Shown here: positions 902-20,795 of the stretch, in pieces | How positions within the stretch are numbered: position 1 is the stretch's first letter | Layout of the letters: each line of letters opens with the position of its first letter | Assembly (NCBI GenBank): GCA_002269645.1 | Contig: NIVC01002939.1 | Coordinates: 1 to 57,386 of the forward strand | From: Macrostomum lignano | Lineage: Eukaryota | Length of the DNA: 57,386 nt | Direction of reading: 5' to 3' | Notes under the pieces: model-generated | What the model was told of the DNA's origin: nothing | The model's input: only the letters and a program-made list of their open reading frames with translations | The model's database searches: none | Program-made: the position numbers and the translations under genes

Positions 902-3900
902 CTGCAATTTGTTTGAGAGCAGCAAACTTAGCTTGCGGATGTGTAGTACCTTACAGTTACAGGTATACGTAGTATGTATGTGGTATGATAATGGCCAAAT
1001 GATGACGATTCAGTGCCATTCAATGCCTCTTTTGAAGCCATTACAGTACATGTACGGTATGGGACAATCCGCATAACAGATAGCATACATTATTAGTTCC
1101 TAAATAATTTGGTTCCGTCTAAGGCCCAACAAGCTGAGATCTCTACCGTTTCAAGCTTCCTACTCGCTTCTAATACACTAGAACCATGTAAAAGCAACGG
1201 ATTTCACTCACAGCCCATATCGCTGGAGCCTGGATTGAAACTTGCAACAACACCGACCAGCTCCTGCAGCACATTGAAGGCGTTCTGCAACGCGTTGCCG
1301 GTGTCTTGAACTGCTTGAATGGCATCTTTCAGGTCGACGAGGGTCACTCCGGAGCTGTTGAGTAAGCTGTCGATGGCCTGCTGGCCAAACTGTTTCATGA
1401 AAAACCGGCCAAAGTTGCCCATCTTGAGAATTGTTTCCGTGATGTTTTCCACGTCTCGAAGTGTCCTGTTAACGCAGAGCTGCTCGACCAGGCTGGAGAC
1501 ATTGTAGGTCACGTTCGAGAAGTCAATGAGGCTCTGTAGCTTGCCAGCGTTGCACAGAGCTTCGGGGAGGCTGAGTTTCAGTGAGAAGTTGAAAAGCTGA
1601 AATTTCAAAATGTAAATATCAGTTTACCTTTGAAGTGGAAACTTTTAGGCTTTAAAATACGAGCTACGAACTAAACTCGGCCAATCTAACCTGTTCGGTG
1701 GACAGATACGAGCTCAAGATGAGATCGGAAACTTCGGCAGGAAATCCCTGGCGCTGTAGATACTGCCTGACTGCACTTGGATCGTCCACAAAGTCTTTGA
1801 CTTGCACTGTAAAGTATTAGAAGCGAGGAAGCCTCCTTGCATTGTATATGACATCTCATCTAATGATTTAATGATTGGAGAATCTACACGCCCATATTTG
1901 CTTACATTTTATTGGGAACAAAGGCTTAGCAAAGTCGAAAAGGCGCAGCGACTTGAAGAACAAGGTGAGATCCGACATTAAGCTCGCCCAGGCAGGGTCG
2001 GTGGACAATCCTTGCAAATCTTTTACCAGCGAATAGCCTCTGAAATAATGCAGATTGACAAGAAAATATGTTAGTGGTGATTCAATGATGCTGGGGTACT
2101 TTTTCAATTATCAATATGAAGGGGACTTCTGAACACGTGCGCGCACACGGATTTGTACACTCGTTTTCAAAGGATGTACAACGACCCTGATTTTCTAATC
2201 CTCATGTATTTACACTCTCTGGGCCTTGAGGGTTGGCCCTTTTTGTCAAATTAAGAGTCTCAAATTAAGGTGGGAAAGCACGGAACTCAACACACCGAGG
2301 TAGGAGCCTATAGCCTCAGGGGGCTAAGGGCTGGATCCCCCAATGGGCTGGCAAAATTATTTTAGCAGTTGTTTCCTTGTTCCTCCTGGTTCTGGCGCCC
2401 CTTGATGCAGGCAAATCCACGCTGGTGGCTCAGGATGGCGTCACAACAATAAAATAAGCTGTCTCCAAGGGGAGGATAATTCTACGGCTGGGGTATTTTA
2501 TCAAATGAGCTCACATTTTCTGAAGCTGCTCTCCCGGGAAGCTTCTGATGAGCGACAGAATAACCGACTCGTACTCGGACATTCGTCGAATATCAAAATT
2601 GCTGAGCAGCTCGCGGATGTCTTGCAGCTGGTTGAGCTGCTCCAACAGGTTGTTGAGATTAGTCAGCGCACGGATCCATCCGCTTAGGTCCAGCCCGCCA
2701 AAGTTCGGAGCGGTGGCGCCGCGAATCAGTAGAAGCATTCTCTGCCTGTCAGCTGGCGACGCGGCCATCTGTTGACAGATGACTCTGGACACTGCACCCA
2801 TGTCAACGGAGAGCACGGCCGGGAAGCTGATGATCTGGCTGATCTTAGTCGGGCTACACAAAGCGTTGTAGAGATCGGCGTCCGACATTGAGGCGATGAA
2901 GCTCTGTTGTGTTTTAGAGCGATTTGTTTGCTTAATTCAAACTGCACGGTGATGGCAACTGTTCGGTTGACACCTGACACTCAGACGCACTCATGCTTCA
3001 AAGGCGTGAATCGCAACTTCCGAATGTGAGACATCGGTCCCACAACCAGCTGCTGAAGGCAATTCTCACAATACCGCTGAACTCCTGCACACATACAAGA
3101 GCGTCAATACCGTACGCAGGCACGCGCTCATGCATGCACTCACACCCTGACTTTCTAATCATTAGGCATGTAATCTCTCTGTGCCTTTGGAACTGGCCCT
3201 CATTGGTTTGGATCGCACGACAACCAATGGCCGCCCACGAAATAGATTCAAAGATTCAAATAATATTATAACAATTGGCTCATAGTTTTACCGAGTTGAA
3301 AATAATCGTAGACCCGATGATTTGATTAAACAGCTCCTTTGTTGTGTCCAACAGCTTGGCGAATTGATCCAACGAGGATGTGGAATTTGCGAGCAGACTT
3401 TGAATGGTCACTTGTCCTGAAAAGAATTGAGTAGCGGAGAGCAATGCATATCGATCCATTCGCTGGGTACTTTGAATATTGGAAGTGGAATGTGAAGGAT
3501 TTATTACTTTTCACTCCCTCAGAAATTGATTTGAAGATGCTGGCCAAATATGATGCCGCCTCTGGACCGATCAGCGTCTGCAGTTGCGATGCCTGATTGG
3601 CGAGCTGCACGAACATGGAGTAGTCAGTCATCATCCTACAATCAGGAAATGGTGCTTGTCACACTGAATTTTGGTTTTAGTACTTCTTGATTGACGGCAC
3701 ATGCGTATCTATAATGTATATTTTAACATAATTTTCCGCAATATAAAAACATCGGCAGAGGTGCATTGTTTTTTATTTCACCTGTTCGACATTGGGTTTC
3801 ACCTATTCAACTCTGGTTTCATTTGTGCGACACTATAGGTTGTCACCAGTTTGACACTAGGTTGTCACCTGTTTGACACTAGGTTGTCACCTGTTCGATA

Positions 3901-18900: not shown

Positions 18901-20795
18901 CAGACAGACAGACAGACAGACAGACAGACAGACAGACAGACAGACAGACACACAGACAGACAGACAGACAGACAGACAGACAGACAGACAGACGGACAGA
19001 CAGACAGACATGCAGACAGACAGAACTCTCACCCCTCCGAGGGTCACAGGCGTGGCCTGCAGATCGGACATGGAGACACCCCGACTCAGCAGTTGTTTGA
19101 CAATTTCCGGAGGCAGCATCTTGTCCAGAGTTGAGTTGAGCACTAAAATTGATTTAGAGGTCTTAATTAATATCTAGAAGGGATATTTTGTCTGACAGGT
19201 CAATGGAAAAGTTCTCACTCAAAGACTGCAGCTGCACCAGGGTGCCAAGAATCCGCTGCCCGCTGCCCATGAACTTCAGGGCCATGTCGAACTGCGCCTT
19301 GCTAGCTGGATCGTTGCTAACCAGAGCGGAAATCAGCTGCACCACCTGCTCAGCTGTCTGCGTCAGGTAGGCAGCGTTGGACAGCAATCCAGGTGCGCTG
19401 AGCAGCTTCTGGAGCTGCTGAACCAGCGCCACGGCCCAGTTGCTCACGGCAACCCTGTCGAGACCTCGCAGGATTTCGAACTGGGGCAGCAGGCGCAGCA
19501 GAGTCTGCAGGTCGCCAATGGCCAGGCTGACGTTGTAGTTGTAGGTGAACTCGGCTACCTGCTTGAACAGGCCGAGCGCTTTGCCGATGTTAAACTGGCT
19601 AAACAGAAAGTCGCTGAAGTTGCTGGCTCTGAACGAGTTCACCGAGCACAGCGCGTTCGAGATCTGGGCAGCTACAGTCGAGTTCTTGTCACCCTCGTAG
19701 TTGATGGAGATGTACTGCACCAGGAGGCTGGGATCGCAAGCAATATCCGTGATGCTCTTTCCGCCGAATGCCGAAATTAGCGACGTCAAGTTCAAACGGC
19801 CCTTCATCAGGGCGGTGGCCGCTTCGGGCGTGAGGAGCCGAGTTTCTTCGCTCAGGAATTCGATCACGAGAGTCTCATTGTAGAACAGACTGCCGATGGT
19901 CATGCTGAGCGAGTCTGCGGGATTCATGCAGAGTTGGTTCAGCCCGTTCTTGTCTGTCCCCATCAATCTGTTGACTCTTGTCGATCCGTGCGTATCGGTC
20001 GCCCAACTCATCAATTATTAAAAAAAGCATTTTTTGAGGAGGGGTTTGTTCAAATCAACTCATCAGGCTAAGAAGACTATAAAATTGCAATGCGCAACAG
20101 AAAACAAGTGGAAACACAATTGGAATTCAGCAATCCATGGCTGCTCTTCCTCTCTCTCCCCTCTTCCCTTCTTCCCCTTTCCTCCCCCAACTCACGCAGC
20201 AAGCTGGACAGATTATTTGCCGCTGCCGAATTTCCCAGCTTTATGATGGCTTTGGTGACTTCTGGCAGCTTCTTCAAGCTGGCCATCTTGGTGTCGTTAA
20301 TCAGTATCGGCGTTAGCGCCTTGTCGAGCCGTTTGAACCGGCCGCGAGCGATGGCCTCGTTCGGCGTCTCCGTGTAATTGGGCGGCAGGCACTGGTTGTC
20401 CAGGTTGCAGCCGAAGGACTGCATGAAGCTCAGCGTGCCCTCCGACGGCATGTTGACACCTCGGTACTGGCCTGTCGATGGTGAGTAGTGGGGCAACCCT
20501 CTTTTAGTTTGTTCGGCCCTAAAAGGCCCAAATTTTATCGAAAGCATTGAGGCTTTTTTCACTTACACGGAGCCAGAGACTCAGGCGGCGACACATGCCG
20601 CACAACCACCACCGACGAGATGATGGCCACGGGCAGCAGAACTTGCGTCACTGACAGGGCCTGGGAATTTTTGGATTTTTTTATAAAATAAGGTTTAACA
20701 AACAAAACAGTGTTTTAAAGCAGACTCACCGCGACGCTGAGGCCTTGAATAATGGCCTTTTGAAGGCCGACAAGCAACGTTACAACAGCTGACAT
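1..20795 (-). CDS. ABCA: Giant ABCA-subfamily ABC transporter (ABCA1/4/7/12/13 type), 5' part only: TM1 plus a very large extracellular domain 1; gene continues past the left edge
   Basis: Exons joined by GT-AG with consistent phases (plus-strand coordinates, 5' to 3'): 20795-20730, 20660-20567, 20471-20196, ~19953-19219, 19142-19033, 18431-18237, 17723-17548, 17438-17320, 17117-16978, 16660-16427, 16312-15510, 15419-15268, 15042-14502, 14208-14072, 13299-12959, 12186-11960, 11300-9446, 9103-8552, 8467-8259, 8169-7908, 7817-7390, 6959-6695, 6608-6420, 6324-6152, 5809-5392, 5301-4690, 4608-4412, 4338-4033, 3635-3508, 3416-3292, 2903-2515, 2039-1906, 1806-1691, 1596-1212, 901-<1. The N-terminus [48 protein letters not shown] matches ABCA1 ..[28 protein letters not shown]. 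The last exon has [25 protein letters not shown] and [10 protein letters not shown], matching ABCA1 LKPLLVGKILYTPDT, LPHHVKYKIRM and YVWGGFAYLQD. About 11,990 nt of coding sequence. Confidence 0.9.
3835..3985. repeat. 22-bp minisatellite (CTAGGTTGTCACCTGTTTGACA), about 7 copies, ABCA intron
   Basis: Direct tandem units read from the sequence. Confidence 0.9.
7119..7180. repeat. 28-bp direct duplication (GCTGGACTTAAAACCGTTTGGAATTCAA x2), ABCA intron
   Basis: Two adjacent identical copies. Confidence 0.85.
11627..11900 (+). mobile_element. tRNA-derived CORE-type SINE, probably 5'-truncated, in an ABCA intron
   Basis: tRNA-like head GGAGAGCGTCCGAC..AAGGTCGGGGGTTCGATTC (B box), then GTGTCCTTGAGCAAGACACTTAAC..TGCTTCAGTTCACCCAGCTGTAAAATGGG, which resembles the MIR/CORE consensus GTGACCTTGGGCAAGTCACTTAAC..CTCAGTTTCCTCATCTGTAAAATGGG; ends in a (TTA)-like tail. 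Confidence 0.7.
13670..13890. repeat. 20-bp minisatellite (GAGACAGGGGCGCCCACCAA / ..CTCACTAA), about 11 copies, ABCA intron
   Basis: Two alternating unit variants in tandem. Confidence 0.9.
14285..14465. repeat. (ATTATG)n hexamer microsatellite, ABCA intron
   Basis: About 30 units with variants; produces the spurious poly-HN and poly-IM ORFs. Confidence 0.95.
17758..18210. repeat. 33-34-bp minisatellite (GAGAATCTGCCTCTCCGCCTCCCTCTCAGTCCTT), about 13 copies, ABCA intron
   Basis: Tandem units filling almost the whole intron 17724-18236. Confidence 0.95.
18505..19023. repeat. (GACA)n microsatellite with CACTAA interruptions, ABCA intron
   Basis: About 520 bp of GACA repeats. Confidence 0.97.

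Follow-up and report, generated by a model that had tools for sequence, protein, structure and literature searches.

Gene structure at the locus

The window, a stretch of 57,386 nt that makes up contig NIVC01002939.1 of Macrostomum lignano, carries on its minus strand, a detail left unstated in the initial annotation, a gene assigned from its sequence to the ABCA family. An exon-chaining program combining codon log-odds with GT-AG scoring recovered exactly the exon boundaries 20471 and 1212 proposed in the initial annotation, while between them the independent chain ran through 32 exons, not the claimed 34, and through about 3,670 codons where about 3,700 had been claimed. A re-run gained the exon 2039..1906 and lengthened 1806..1691, which brought the spacing between units U16 and U17 back to 212 aa; the boundaries of the gained exon match two recurrent intron classes, phase 2 (about -98 aa) and phase 1 (about -54 aa). 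The chain equals the GenBank protein PAA54280.1 (3,734 aa, "hypothetical protein BOX15_Mlig019051g1, partial"), which sits on this contig, save for one alternative acceptor (19914 vs 19953, 13 aa). The annotation behind PAA54280.1 is RNA-seq-guided and the model spans the exon chain: the array exons thus belong, as initially proposed, to one gene rather than to several. The main features are:

20730..20795, minus strand: first coding exon of the chain, identical to the start of PAA54280.1 and of the homeolog models P0006 and P0010
20567..20660, minus strand: TM1 exon, the sole strong Kyte-Doolittle peak, aligning to TM1 of ABCA7/1/4
20196..20471, minus strand: exon with the conserved ECD1 start (phmmer against PDB)
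1212..19953, minus strand: array of 17 modules, each about 210 aa long, encoded by 31 exons (acceptor of the first exon at 19914 in the transcript-based model)
9446..11300, minus strand: intron-less exon of 1,855 nt, spanning about 2.8 modules (end of U7, U8, U9, start of U10)
1906..2039, minus strand: exon absent from the first model, present also in PAA54280.1 and model P0002
1..929, minus strand: canonical ECD1 base (ISQAVCG...), leaving the contig at position 1

TM1, the single transmembrane segment ahead of the array, accounts for the Kyte-Doolittle peak, which reaches 2.28 at residues 24-42. In ECD1 the 17 tandem modules are placed between an N-terminal piece and a base of the kind usual for ABCA proteins.

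The 17-module array

All 34 Cys-motif strings quoted in the initial annotation were found, in a single order from 19744 down to 1468, and form 17 pairs. The hairpins, from the C1 to the C2 motif, are located as follows:

U1 hairpin: 19744-19637, minus strand
U2 hairpin: 18377-18282, minus strand
U3 hairpin: 16618-16502, minus strand
U4 hairpin: 15814-15725, minus strand
U5 hairpin: 14851-14762, minus strand
U6 hairpin: 13123-13034, minus strand
U7 hairpin: 10957-10865, minus strand
U8 hairpin: 10360-10244, minus strand
U9 hairpin: 9697-9608, minus strand
U10 hairpin: 8695-8612, minus strand
U11 hairpin: 7775-7680, minus strand
U12 hairpin: 6572-6489, minus strand
U13 hairpin: 5556-5482, minus strand
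U14 hairpin: 4890-4756, minus strand
U15 hairpin: 4334-4206, minus strand
U16 hairpin: 2861-2769, minus strand
U17 hairpin: 1557-1468, minus strand

The loops comprise 20-40 residues (exactly 25 in 7 of the 17 pairs), and the C1-to-C1 distance varies from 134 to 245 aa, being 190-230 aa for most units; a recurrence of roughly 200-230 aa had been noticed initially. The pairs account for 34 of the 48 cysteines. Both Cys were invariant in an alignment of 20 units, which showed low sequence conservation outside the Cys, Pro and hydrophobic positions. The many N-x-S/T sequons reported previously were also present: 85-86 were counted against about 32 expected from composition (about 2.7-fold), with 2-8 per unit. 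For a soluble domain the array carries unusually little charge and is unusually hydrophobic (12.5% DEKR, GRAVY +0.29). No Pfam domain was found in the array region.

In an AF2 model of a single unit, of moderate to low confidence (pLDDT 68, pTM 0.44), the fold was all-alpha, C1 being located at the end of one helix and C2 within the following one; the module is predicted to close with a helix-loop-helix held by its single Cys pair.

Evidence for serial duplication

Internal BLASTP gave off-diagonal scores of 32-36 bits, where the top scores of 10 shuffles were 24-29 bits, and 28 HSPs of at least 25 bits compared to 0-7 in shuffles, at offsets that were multiples of about 220 aa. In leave-one-out HMM searches, 11 of the 17 units scored above all 100 shuffles (z 3.5-11.8), while units 2-4 and 14-16 did not; the latter were counted as modules from the Cys pair and the intron pattern only.

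Intron positions and phases relative to the hairpins produced 44 same-phase pairs against 10.1 +/- 3.1 expected, a value reached in 0 of 5,000 randomisations. Three of the recurrent introns precede C1, a phase-2 intron by about 100 aa, a phase-1 intron by about 58 aa and a phase-0 intron by about 16 aa, and the fourth, also of phase 0, follows C2 by about 25 aa: each module derives from a four-exon cassette. In the exon 9446..11300 every cassette intron has been lost. The regularity of the Cys pairs, the excess internal similarity, the leave-one-out profiles and the recurrent intron positions and phases together support serial duplication as the origin of the array. ECD1 measures about 3,900 aa, as initially noted. 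The array grew by duplication of cassettes and of 2-4-cassette blocks, followed by patchy intron loss.

Family assignment and the homeolog

The conserved ECD1 start matched ABCA7 (26.5 bits) and ABCA1 (22.1 bits) in phmmer searches against PDB; the N-terminus aligns to residues 26-140 of ABCA7/1/4, and the ECD1 base to ABCA4 366-430 and 505-586. These alignments identify the gene as an ABCA family member, as had been recognised initially. Neither a TMD nor an NBD was found within the window, so that the link between the array and a transporter half rests on a 99%-identical homeolog, which downstream of the array encodes NBD1, TM7-ECD2, TMD2 and NBD2, the frames of its TMD1 region being jumbled. 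The homeolog transporter half scored 466/451/427 bits against ABCA1/4/7 and 301 against ABCA3, with TIGR01257 as the best NCBIfam match. The homeolog thus shows that a complete ABCA1/4/7-type transporter follows: the remainder (TMD1, NBD1, short ECD2, TMD2, NBD2) lies past the contig end, and the whole protein has about 5,500 aa. Compared to the homeolog, the array had a pN/pS of 0.16 over 1,998 codons (p = 3e-13) and is thus under purifying selection.

ABCA1, ABCA4 and ABCA7 have in common with the flatworm gene and its homeolog the N-terminal ECD1 segment, the base motifs and the TMD/NBD halves. Their ECD1, in contrast, is about 600 aa long, has no repeat, and showed no significant sequence similarity and, with the weak unit model, no fold match to the module. 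Vertebrate ABCA13 (5,058 aa in human, 5,034 aa in mouse) is likewise a full ABCA transporter with a giant ECD1 between TM1 and the base, and no Pfam domain is reported in its long N-terminal region either. A human ABCA13 N-terminal sequence, verified only for its length and 4 of 4 variant residues, was not recognised by the unit profile and presumably lacks regular Cys-pair periodicity, which we take as a lead only. A very large exon lies inside the enlarged region in both: 1,855 nt in the flatworm and, as given in the title of Prades (2002), 4.8 kb in human ABCA13. The flatworm transporter half is very divergent: a word-seeded search with it retrieved no giant or ABCA13-named protein, and the best non-self match was 34% identical.

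The module in other animals

Exhaustive phmmer search yielded a sea-slug fragment, Plakobranchus ocellatus GFN74620.1 (P0003; E 4.8e-6 in 1.84e9 proteins), to which a profile built from flatworm units only gave 64.9 bits over 3 domains. This 530-aa hypothetical protein fragment contains three modules whose C-x25-C hairpins are spaced by 205-223 aa, shares the motif ...F(x3)FCSLN(L/V)T with flatworm unit 7, and matches the flatworm cassette exactly in the positions and phases of the four introns of each module. It comes from a contig of only 7.6 kb and is known without ABCA gene context. The resemblance between its units 1 and 3 is visibly much closer than that within any flatworm pair, suggesting a recent two-unit block duplication.

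The same flatworm-only profile gave 32.9 bits (shuffle maximum 2.5) against ECD1 of the published "ABCA13" of the copepod Tigriopus japonicus (KF906268, 3,124 aa), matching on the hairpins C205-230, C511-535 and C1200-1230. The conserved ends of the flatworm gene also had their best match in this protein (35-36 bits; ECD1 start 35.3). The copepod carries roughly 4-6 module copies in about 1,150 aa, compared to 17 in about 3,500 aa in the flatworm; with 21.6% charged residues and a net charge of -133, its insert is acidic, unlike the nearly uncharged flatworm array. As the copepod and slug versions are both acidic (19-22% charged), low charge is not common to the module family. The initial statement that only vertebrate ABCA13 is comparably large does not hold in view of the copepod protein. 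An arthropod clade, tetur27g01890 / CG34120, has been published as sister to human ABCA12 and ABCA13, and the flatworm gene appears to belong to an invertebrate ABCA12/13-type lineage.

Function and alternative explanations

The locus probably holds the first four-fifths, counted from the 5' end, of one expressed ABCA gene with a 17-module appendage in ECD1 that would act in sorting or lipid hand-over. By ABCA topology the array would face the outside or a vesicle lumen, presumably as a long, glycan-coated, uncharged and rather hydrophobic helical appendage atop the ECD base. Its most likely role would be in sorting or retention of the transporter and in hand-over or holding of exported lipid. 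This proposal takes mouse ABCA13 as its analogue: there, vesicular localisation and cholesterol internalisation both require the long N-terminal region (Nakato et al., 2020, PMC7948424).

A continuous tunnel appears less likely than such a role. The units had initially been called tunnel-like from their likeness to ABCA1 LCNGS..ELCGL, and serial copies of this ECD segment could together make a very long hydrophobic conduit or reservoir for lipid outside the cell. The array, flanked by the conserved N-terminus and the base, does occupy the exact site of the single Cys pair of ABCA1 (C195, C215), and both its composition and the predicted all-alpha fold, like that of ABCA ECD, would suit a conduit. 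However, the unit profile had zero matches among solved structures even at E <= 10; against the verified ABCA1 139-303 it gave 2.5-3.1 bits, within the shuffle range (z 1.0-1.6; equalled by 42-63 of 500 shuffles); and Foldseek with the unit model, which is too weak for a true negative, listed helical repeats of a generic kind (best E 1.6, TM about 0.25) but not an ABCA. The likeness to ABCA1 was not borne out, the low charge is not shared by the acidic copepod and slug modules, and a conduit is unlikely.

The sequon excess, the one structural disulfide in each module, the low conservation beyond Cys, Pro and hydrophobic positions and the copy number differing between lineages could also indicate a glycocalyx-like rod or glycosylated spacer, resembling a mucin by role but not by sequence, that stands out from the membrane and serves protection, adhesion or matrix contact largely apart from lipid transport. 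We regard this as improbable: the pN/pS points to constraint on the whole sequence beyond mere length, the module lies inside an ABCA ECD1 wherever its context is known or named (the slug fragment being without context), and mouse ABCA13 depends on its N-terminal region for its own function as a transporter.

A mis-joined exon prediction or a pseudogene was considered because of the state of the contig end. The frame of the ECD1 base is broken at about 715, 669, 631-630, 465, 240, 188-187 and 165 (the frame changes five times within the final 700 nt), in-frame stops occur at window positions 1-750, and PAA54280.1, labelled "partial", ends at the first break. The homeolog has two compensating indels in the same base stretch besides its garbled TMD1 region, and the PacBio assembly has only about 64% error-free bases. 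But every break is a length difference of 1-2 nt in a homopolymer or dinucleotide stretch between copies that are 99% identical, and all fall within the final 700 nt of a PacBio contig; they are therefore read as probable consensus indel errors; taking one copy or the other at the breaks restores a 239-residue collinear alignment to the copepod ABCA. With 32 clean GT-AG exons over about 11 kb of upstream CDS, transcript-based gene models and the purifying selection on the array, artefact or decay is very improbable.

Exchangeable apolipoproteins have a polar helix face rich in Glu, Lys and Arg, and the initially suggested built-in apolipoprotein-like acceptor of amphipathic helices, for which the predicted helices and the location on the side to which the transporter exports its lipid would speak, is hardly credible with so few charged residues, a structural disulfide in each module and heavy glycosylation potential.

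The preferred reading remains a sorting or lipid hand-over appendage of an ABCA transporter. The initial view of it as a candidate for an undescribed system is not supported, the gene being already deposited as an uncharacterised hypothetical protein and the module being shared with molluscs and arthropods. Since the slug shares both module and intron pattern and the copepod "ABCA13" shares the module, the latter is apparently an old yet undescribed building block rather than an oddity of one lineage.

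Gene Model and Transcript Support

The long open frames at 1–21 kb of the window lie on the minus strand. Exon chaining by dynamic programming, with generic GT-AG scores and codon log-odds that had been trained on the longest open exons, recovered one chain of canonical GT-AG exons, whose boundaries include exactly the two coordinates, 20471 and 1212, between which the initial annotation had placed a giant ABCA ectodomain. A second exon-chaining run, in which the splice PWM was self-trained and introns were softly penalised, introduced spurious micro-exons; kept from it were solely the exon 2039..1906, absent from the first chain, and an extended version of 1806..1691. 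The gene has already been deposited in GenBank as an uncharacterised protein from the Mlig_3_7 assembly (PAA54280.1, 'hypothetical protein BOX15_Mlig019051g1, partial', 3,734 aa), and our model is identical to it except for one alternative acceptor (13 aa difference). Since the Mlig_3_7 gene models were derived from a genome-guided RNA-seq assembly (PMC5730564), this match makes the exon chain transcript-supported and a single transcription unit, as the initial annotation had proposed to confirm by RNA-seq; a division into several separate genes was rejected on the transcript-based model. All 34 of its quoted cysteine motif strings were found on the minus strand in a single order, from 19744 down to 1468. 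In the first array exon (minus strand) the acceptor is at 19914 in the transcript-based GenBank model and at 19953 in the exon chain, which adds the 13 aa; this could be either alternative splicing or a simple mis-call by the exon scoring.

ABCA Identity and the Transporter Half

The N-terminal residues 26–140 match TM1 and the first part of the first extracytosolic domain (ECD1) of ABCA7, ABCA1 and ABCA4 (residues 26–114 with ABCA7 26–109 at E 3.9e-5), and the ECD1 start scored 35.3 bits against a copepod ABCA. As in ABCA proteins, a large ECD1 comes after TM1 and begins with the motif (M/L)PSxGTLxW/F..C..N.C, and the conserved C-terminal part of ECD1 (the base) carries the expected motifs KP.l.G.I.YTPdt, ..C...f, hVKYkIRM and GF..lQ, the 3' kilobase aligning to ABCA4 366–430 and 505–586 and to ABCA1 483–571. 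A Pfam search detected no domain in the ~3,500 residues between the N-terminal segment and the base. TM1 is the sole strong hydrophobic segment ahead of the base. Going by the topology of ABCA proteins, the entire intervening array would lie outside the cytosol.

The window is one whole contig of Mlig_3_7 and ends within the ECD1 base, so that the two TMDs and two NBDs lie outside the window. In a 99% identical homeolog locus (L001, NIVC01002244.1), NBD1, TM7 with a short ECD2, TMD2 and NBD2 follow directly downstream. Compared with a PDB set of ABCA proteins consisting of ABCA1, ABCA3, ABCA4 and ABCA7 alone, this transporter half scored 466, 451 and 427 bits with ABCA1, ABCA4 and ABCA7, and 301 bits with ABCA3; its best NCBIfam model was TIGR01257, rim ABC transporter. 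The TMD1 region of the homeolog (21285–22300) has no single open frame, with plausible membrane pieces in different frames (introns or consensus errors), and the GenBank homeolog model ends just before it. A complete protein of ~5,500 aa is predicted from this locus, in which the assembly leaves the TMD1 frames jumbled. Word-seeded protein searches with the 630-aa exon and with the conserved ends returned no match, and those with the transporter half returned scattered ordinary ABCAs, among them neither a giant protein nor one named ABCA13. The closest non-self relative was a 1,362-aa protein from a Logan assembly (P0013), which shares 34% identity with the flatworm transporter half across 81% of its length and may originate from another flatworm.

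Frame Breaks and Coding Constraint

At positions 1–750 of the window the ABCA-homologous segments fall in different frames, separated by gaps of 1, 2, 38, 1 and 13 nt and with in-frame stops, and the 'partial' GenBank protein terminates at the first break. In the alignment with the homeolog the first 590 nt are free of indels, and the last 700 nt contain 11 gap positions, all of them in short homopolymer or dinucleotide runs whose lengths differ by 1–2 nt; the probable indels of the window are at about 715, 669, 631, 465, 240, 188 and 165. A corrected frame, taken from the homeolog at most sites and from the window at two, with GGG inferred at one, gave a continuous ORF in which the base matched a copepod ABCA as one collinear domain of 239 residues. 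Mlig_3_7, assembled from PacBio reads with Canu, has ~64% of its bases free of errors and contains many duplicated blocks that are >=95% identical (PMC5730564). From the run-length differences, the restored collinear frame and the assembly quality we conclude that the breaks are consensus errors at the contig end and not decay. The homeolog and the window have 1,998 codons in common, at which the two copies differ by 44 synonymous and 22 nonsynonymous changes (pN/pS = 0.16, Fisher p = 3e-13), which identifies the array as constrained coding sequence under purifying selection; on this ratio and the indel pattern a pseudogene was rejected. In the homeolog, two indels of opposite sign (-1 and +1; 20949 and 21000 of L001) lie 51 nt from each other, leaving 17 codons out of frame before the frame is restored: either two chance-compensating errors or a real compensated frameshift.

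Tandem Module Array

The ECD1 insert contains 17 cysteine pairs (C1–C2 hairpins), which account for 34 of the 48 cysteines. The loops are 20–40 residues long, exactly 25 in seven pairs, and the C1-to-C1 spacing is 134–245 aa, mostly 190–230, including 212 aa between units 16 and 17 once the rescued exon is present. N-glycosylation sequons number 85–86 against ~32 expected, with 2–8 in every unit.

That these units arose by serial duplication, as initially proposed, is supported by internal similarity and strengthened by the introns. The similarity between units proved significant. Off-diagonal BLASTP matches of segments against the protein reached 32–36 bits, compared with a maximum of 24–29 in ten shuffles, at offsets near 204, 440, 676, 885 and 1,565 aa, i.e., multiples of ~220 aa; the frequent offsets of two or four units suggest block duplications. 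With leave-one-out HMMs 11 of the 17 units exceeded all 100 shuffles (z 3.5–11.8), although units 2–4 and 14–16 were not detected in this test. A hairpin profile made from short, badly aligned within-exon pieces left the outer units undetected in a proxy benchmark, at only 5–11 bits. Both cysteines are invariant in an alignment of the 17 flatworm units with three from a sea slug, and a proline ~55–60 aa before C1 is semi-conserved.

Independently of sequence similarity, introns recur in four classes.

Recurrent intron classes in the flatworm array
Phase 2, about -100 to -106 aa from C1, 8 units
Phase 1, -54 to -63 aa from C1, 5–6 units
Phase 0, -14 to -20 aa from C1, 6 units
Phase 0, +17 to +32 aa after C2, 7 units

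Same-phase intron pairs numbered 44, against 10.1 +/- 3.1 under random placement and 15.9 +/- 3.1 with the phases alone shuffled, and none of 5,000 randomisations of either kind reached 44. The boundaries of the rescued exon 2039..1906 correspond exactly to two of these classes. The recurrent positions and phases identify the ancestral unit as a four-exon cassette. Many of its introns have since disappeared, and a 1,855-nt exon spanning 2.8 units retains none.

The Module in a Sea Slug and a Copepod

When 1.84 billion representative proteins were searched exhaustively by HMMER with the 618-aa exon (9446–11299, minus strand), only four matches were obtained, including PAA54280.1 itself; cluster look-up attributed the flatworm matches to Macrostomum lignano. 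The only eukaryotic one from outside the flatworms came from the sea slug Plakobranchus ocellatus, as a fragment of 530 aa (GFN74620.1, E 4.8e-6). A bacterial match (P0004, E 3.6e-4), a repetitive Ig-like protein, looks spurious. The sea-slug fragment has three C-x25-C hairpins 205–223 aa apart, and a profile built from flatworm units only scored 64.9 bits against it, with one domain per hairpin (shuffle maximum 6.2). It is encoded by ten exons on a 7.6-kb contig, with the same four intron classes and phases as in the flatworm.

Introns of the sea-slug fragment
Phase 0, -14.5 aa, three times
Phase 1, -53 and -55 aa
Phase 2, -95 and -103 aa
Phase 0, +23.5 aa after C2, twice

On this contig (BLXT01000143.1) units 1 and 3 are visibly far more alike than any pair of flatworm units, indicating a recent two-unit block duplication and thus ongoing, lineage-specific growth of the array.

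The copepod protein, from Tigriopus japonicus, was published as 'ABCA13' (3,124 aa, cDNA in the supplement of PMC4247197). Its ECD1 of 1,600 aa has hairpins at C205–230, C511–535, C734–762 and C1200–1230; the flatworm-only profile scored 32.9 bits against this insert (shuffle maximum 2.5, 0/300), and the matched stretches coincide with three of the four hairpins. Judging from these sequences, the module is older than the flatworms and has been kept in two other phyla.

Predicted Fold and Composition

The initial annotation had called the modules tunnel-like and had likened them to the ABCA1 segment '...VDKML...LCNGS...ELCGL', readings to which the comparisons gave no support. The unit profile found no solved structure in the PDB even at E <= 10. 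ABCA1 residues 139–424 were checked against the PDB, and ABCA1 139–303 scored 2.5–3.1 bits with the unit profiles (z 1.0–1.6), values equalled by 42–63 of 500 shuffles. ABCA1 has a single cysteine pair (C195, C215) where the flatworm protein has the array, and the positional analogy alone remains.

Unit 9, aligned with its 16 paralogs, was modelled by AlphaFold2 as all-alpha with about ten helices (pLDDT 67.9, pTM 0.44), C1 being predicted at a helix end and C2 inside the next helix. Foldseek with this low-confidence model (pLDDT 68, pTM 0.44) returned generic helical repeats from the PDB (best E 1.6, TM ~0.25), and no ABCA chain was among the best 50 matches. A two-unit single-sequence model reached a pLDDT of 35.

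In exchangeable apolipoproteins charged residues are abundant on the polar helix faces. The flatworm array contains only 12.5% DEKR and has a GRAVY of +0.29, which speaks against the earlier suggestion of a built-in apolipoprotein-like amphipathic acceptor. In contrast, the copepod and slug versions are acidic and 19–22% charged, so the low charge is a peculiarity of the flatworm and not a property of the module.

Probable Placement in the ABCA12/13 Lineage

The ~3,500 aa inserted between N-terminal motif and base greatly enlarge ECD1, as is characteristic of the ABCA12/ABCA13 clade, and the unit profile matches the insert of a copepod protein annotated as ABCA13. The conserved ends of the flatworm protein scored 35–36 bits with this copepod protein compared with 18–32 bits with ABCA1/4/7. 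Arthropod genes are sister to human ABCA12 plus ABCA13 (Dermauw et al., PMC3724490). Given this clade, the shared module and the scores of the ends, the flatworm gene probably belongs to an invertebrate ABCA12/13-type lineage. The UniRef name of the N-terminal fragment, 'ABCA12', was assigned automatically.

ABCA13 is the largest ABC protein. The comparison with the human protein used a provisional sequence of exactly 5,058 residues, in which the four published variant residues H3609, T4031, T4550 and R4843 match in context. The unit profile gave -21.6 bits against this sequence, which is provisional above all in its N-terminal residues. Its cysteines, as placed there, are not periodic, with a few hairpin-like pairs near both ends and Cys-free stretches of 360–480 residues. 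As a lead only, this speaks against the flatworm gene being a simple ortholog that shares its architecture with ABCA13; extreme divergence and independent expansion are both possibilities. The N-terminal region of ABCA13 is without homology to known human proteins and without a conserved domain, and is needed for vesicular localisation and cholesterol internalisation (Nakato et al., 2020, PMC7948424). No published description of a repeat architecture in ABCA13-type ectodomains and no publication on flatworm ABCAs were found, and the module definition common to flatworm, mollusc and copepod, its four-exon cassette and the record copy number in Macrostomum lignano appear to be new.

Other Features of the Window

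The window is GC-balanced and dense in minisatellites, with units of 16–34 bp (41 TRF rows, e.g., a 22-mer x 68 and a 16-mer x 110), a density that fits the published figure of 15% simple/tandem repeats for the M. lignano genome.

Features outside the ABCA coding exons
40143–45127, plus strand, CCR4/CNOT6-like gene: leucine-rich-repeat exons (...LSYNQLKSLPPQIGALTELKELHLQ...), then endonuclease/exonuclease/phosphatase exons (...VIICGDFNSLPDSG..., ...PSDHFSLLVELELK)
49324–51306, plus strand, exons of a mitochondrial-carrier (SLC25-type) gene (...PFERIQTLLQ..., ...LVYPLNVAKSHMQARV...)
53417–54703 (minus) and 56987–57295 (plus), MACPF-domain gene, signature FGTHVVTTVDAGG
21746–26462, 27825–28323, 29536–32426, 45243–46469, 47279–48640 and 49789–50799, minisatellites (TRF)
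18507–19024, 17759–18210, 13673–13890, 14283–14464 and 3778–3984, minisatellites in introns

Several ABCA-gene introns thus hold minisatellites, and those of the CCR4/CNOT6-like gene are filled by them. At the contig end a related MACPF-gene exon is inverted (...NENLVAIDRNGEPLCDVISEANLP... vs ...KENLVGVDVDGEPLYAVISRRSLP...), which suggests an inverted pair of paralogs.

Proposed Function and Significance

On a lipid exporter of the ABCA12/13 type, the array would most likely be a long helical appendage, coated in glycans, of the outer or luminal face; by analogy with mouse ABCA13, it would have a part in transporter sorting and in receiving or holding the exported lipid. A continuous tunnel through the array is possible, with no support from the present data. 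We consider it very improbable that the 17 modules stack as a rigid, glycan-sheathed helical rod of tens of nanometres with a continuous hydrophobic groove or channel, making an extracellular or luminal bridge-like lipid conduit on an ABC exporter, with its length tuned by cassette copy number across animals and the N-terminal region of vertebrate ABCA13 as a degenerate version; such a conduit would be analogous in principle to the intracellular bridge-like lipid-transfer proteins.

At least in protostomes, the ECD1 region of ABCA13-type transporters is not featureless and consists of an ancient, exon-defined module of ~210 aa, predicted to be all-alpha with one disulfide, in copy numbers from a few to 17. 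The module provides a definable unit for expression, structure determination and mutation, as well as a search profile, and the intron phases of its cassette are a signature testable in vertebrate ABCA12/13. M. lignano, a tractable model with transgenesis and RNAi, is the animal with the maximal array, and its gene exemplifies exon-cassette amplification and intron loss within a transporter ectodomain. Should vertebrates prove to lack the module, giant ECD1s must have evolved independently on two or more occasions.
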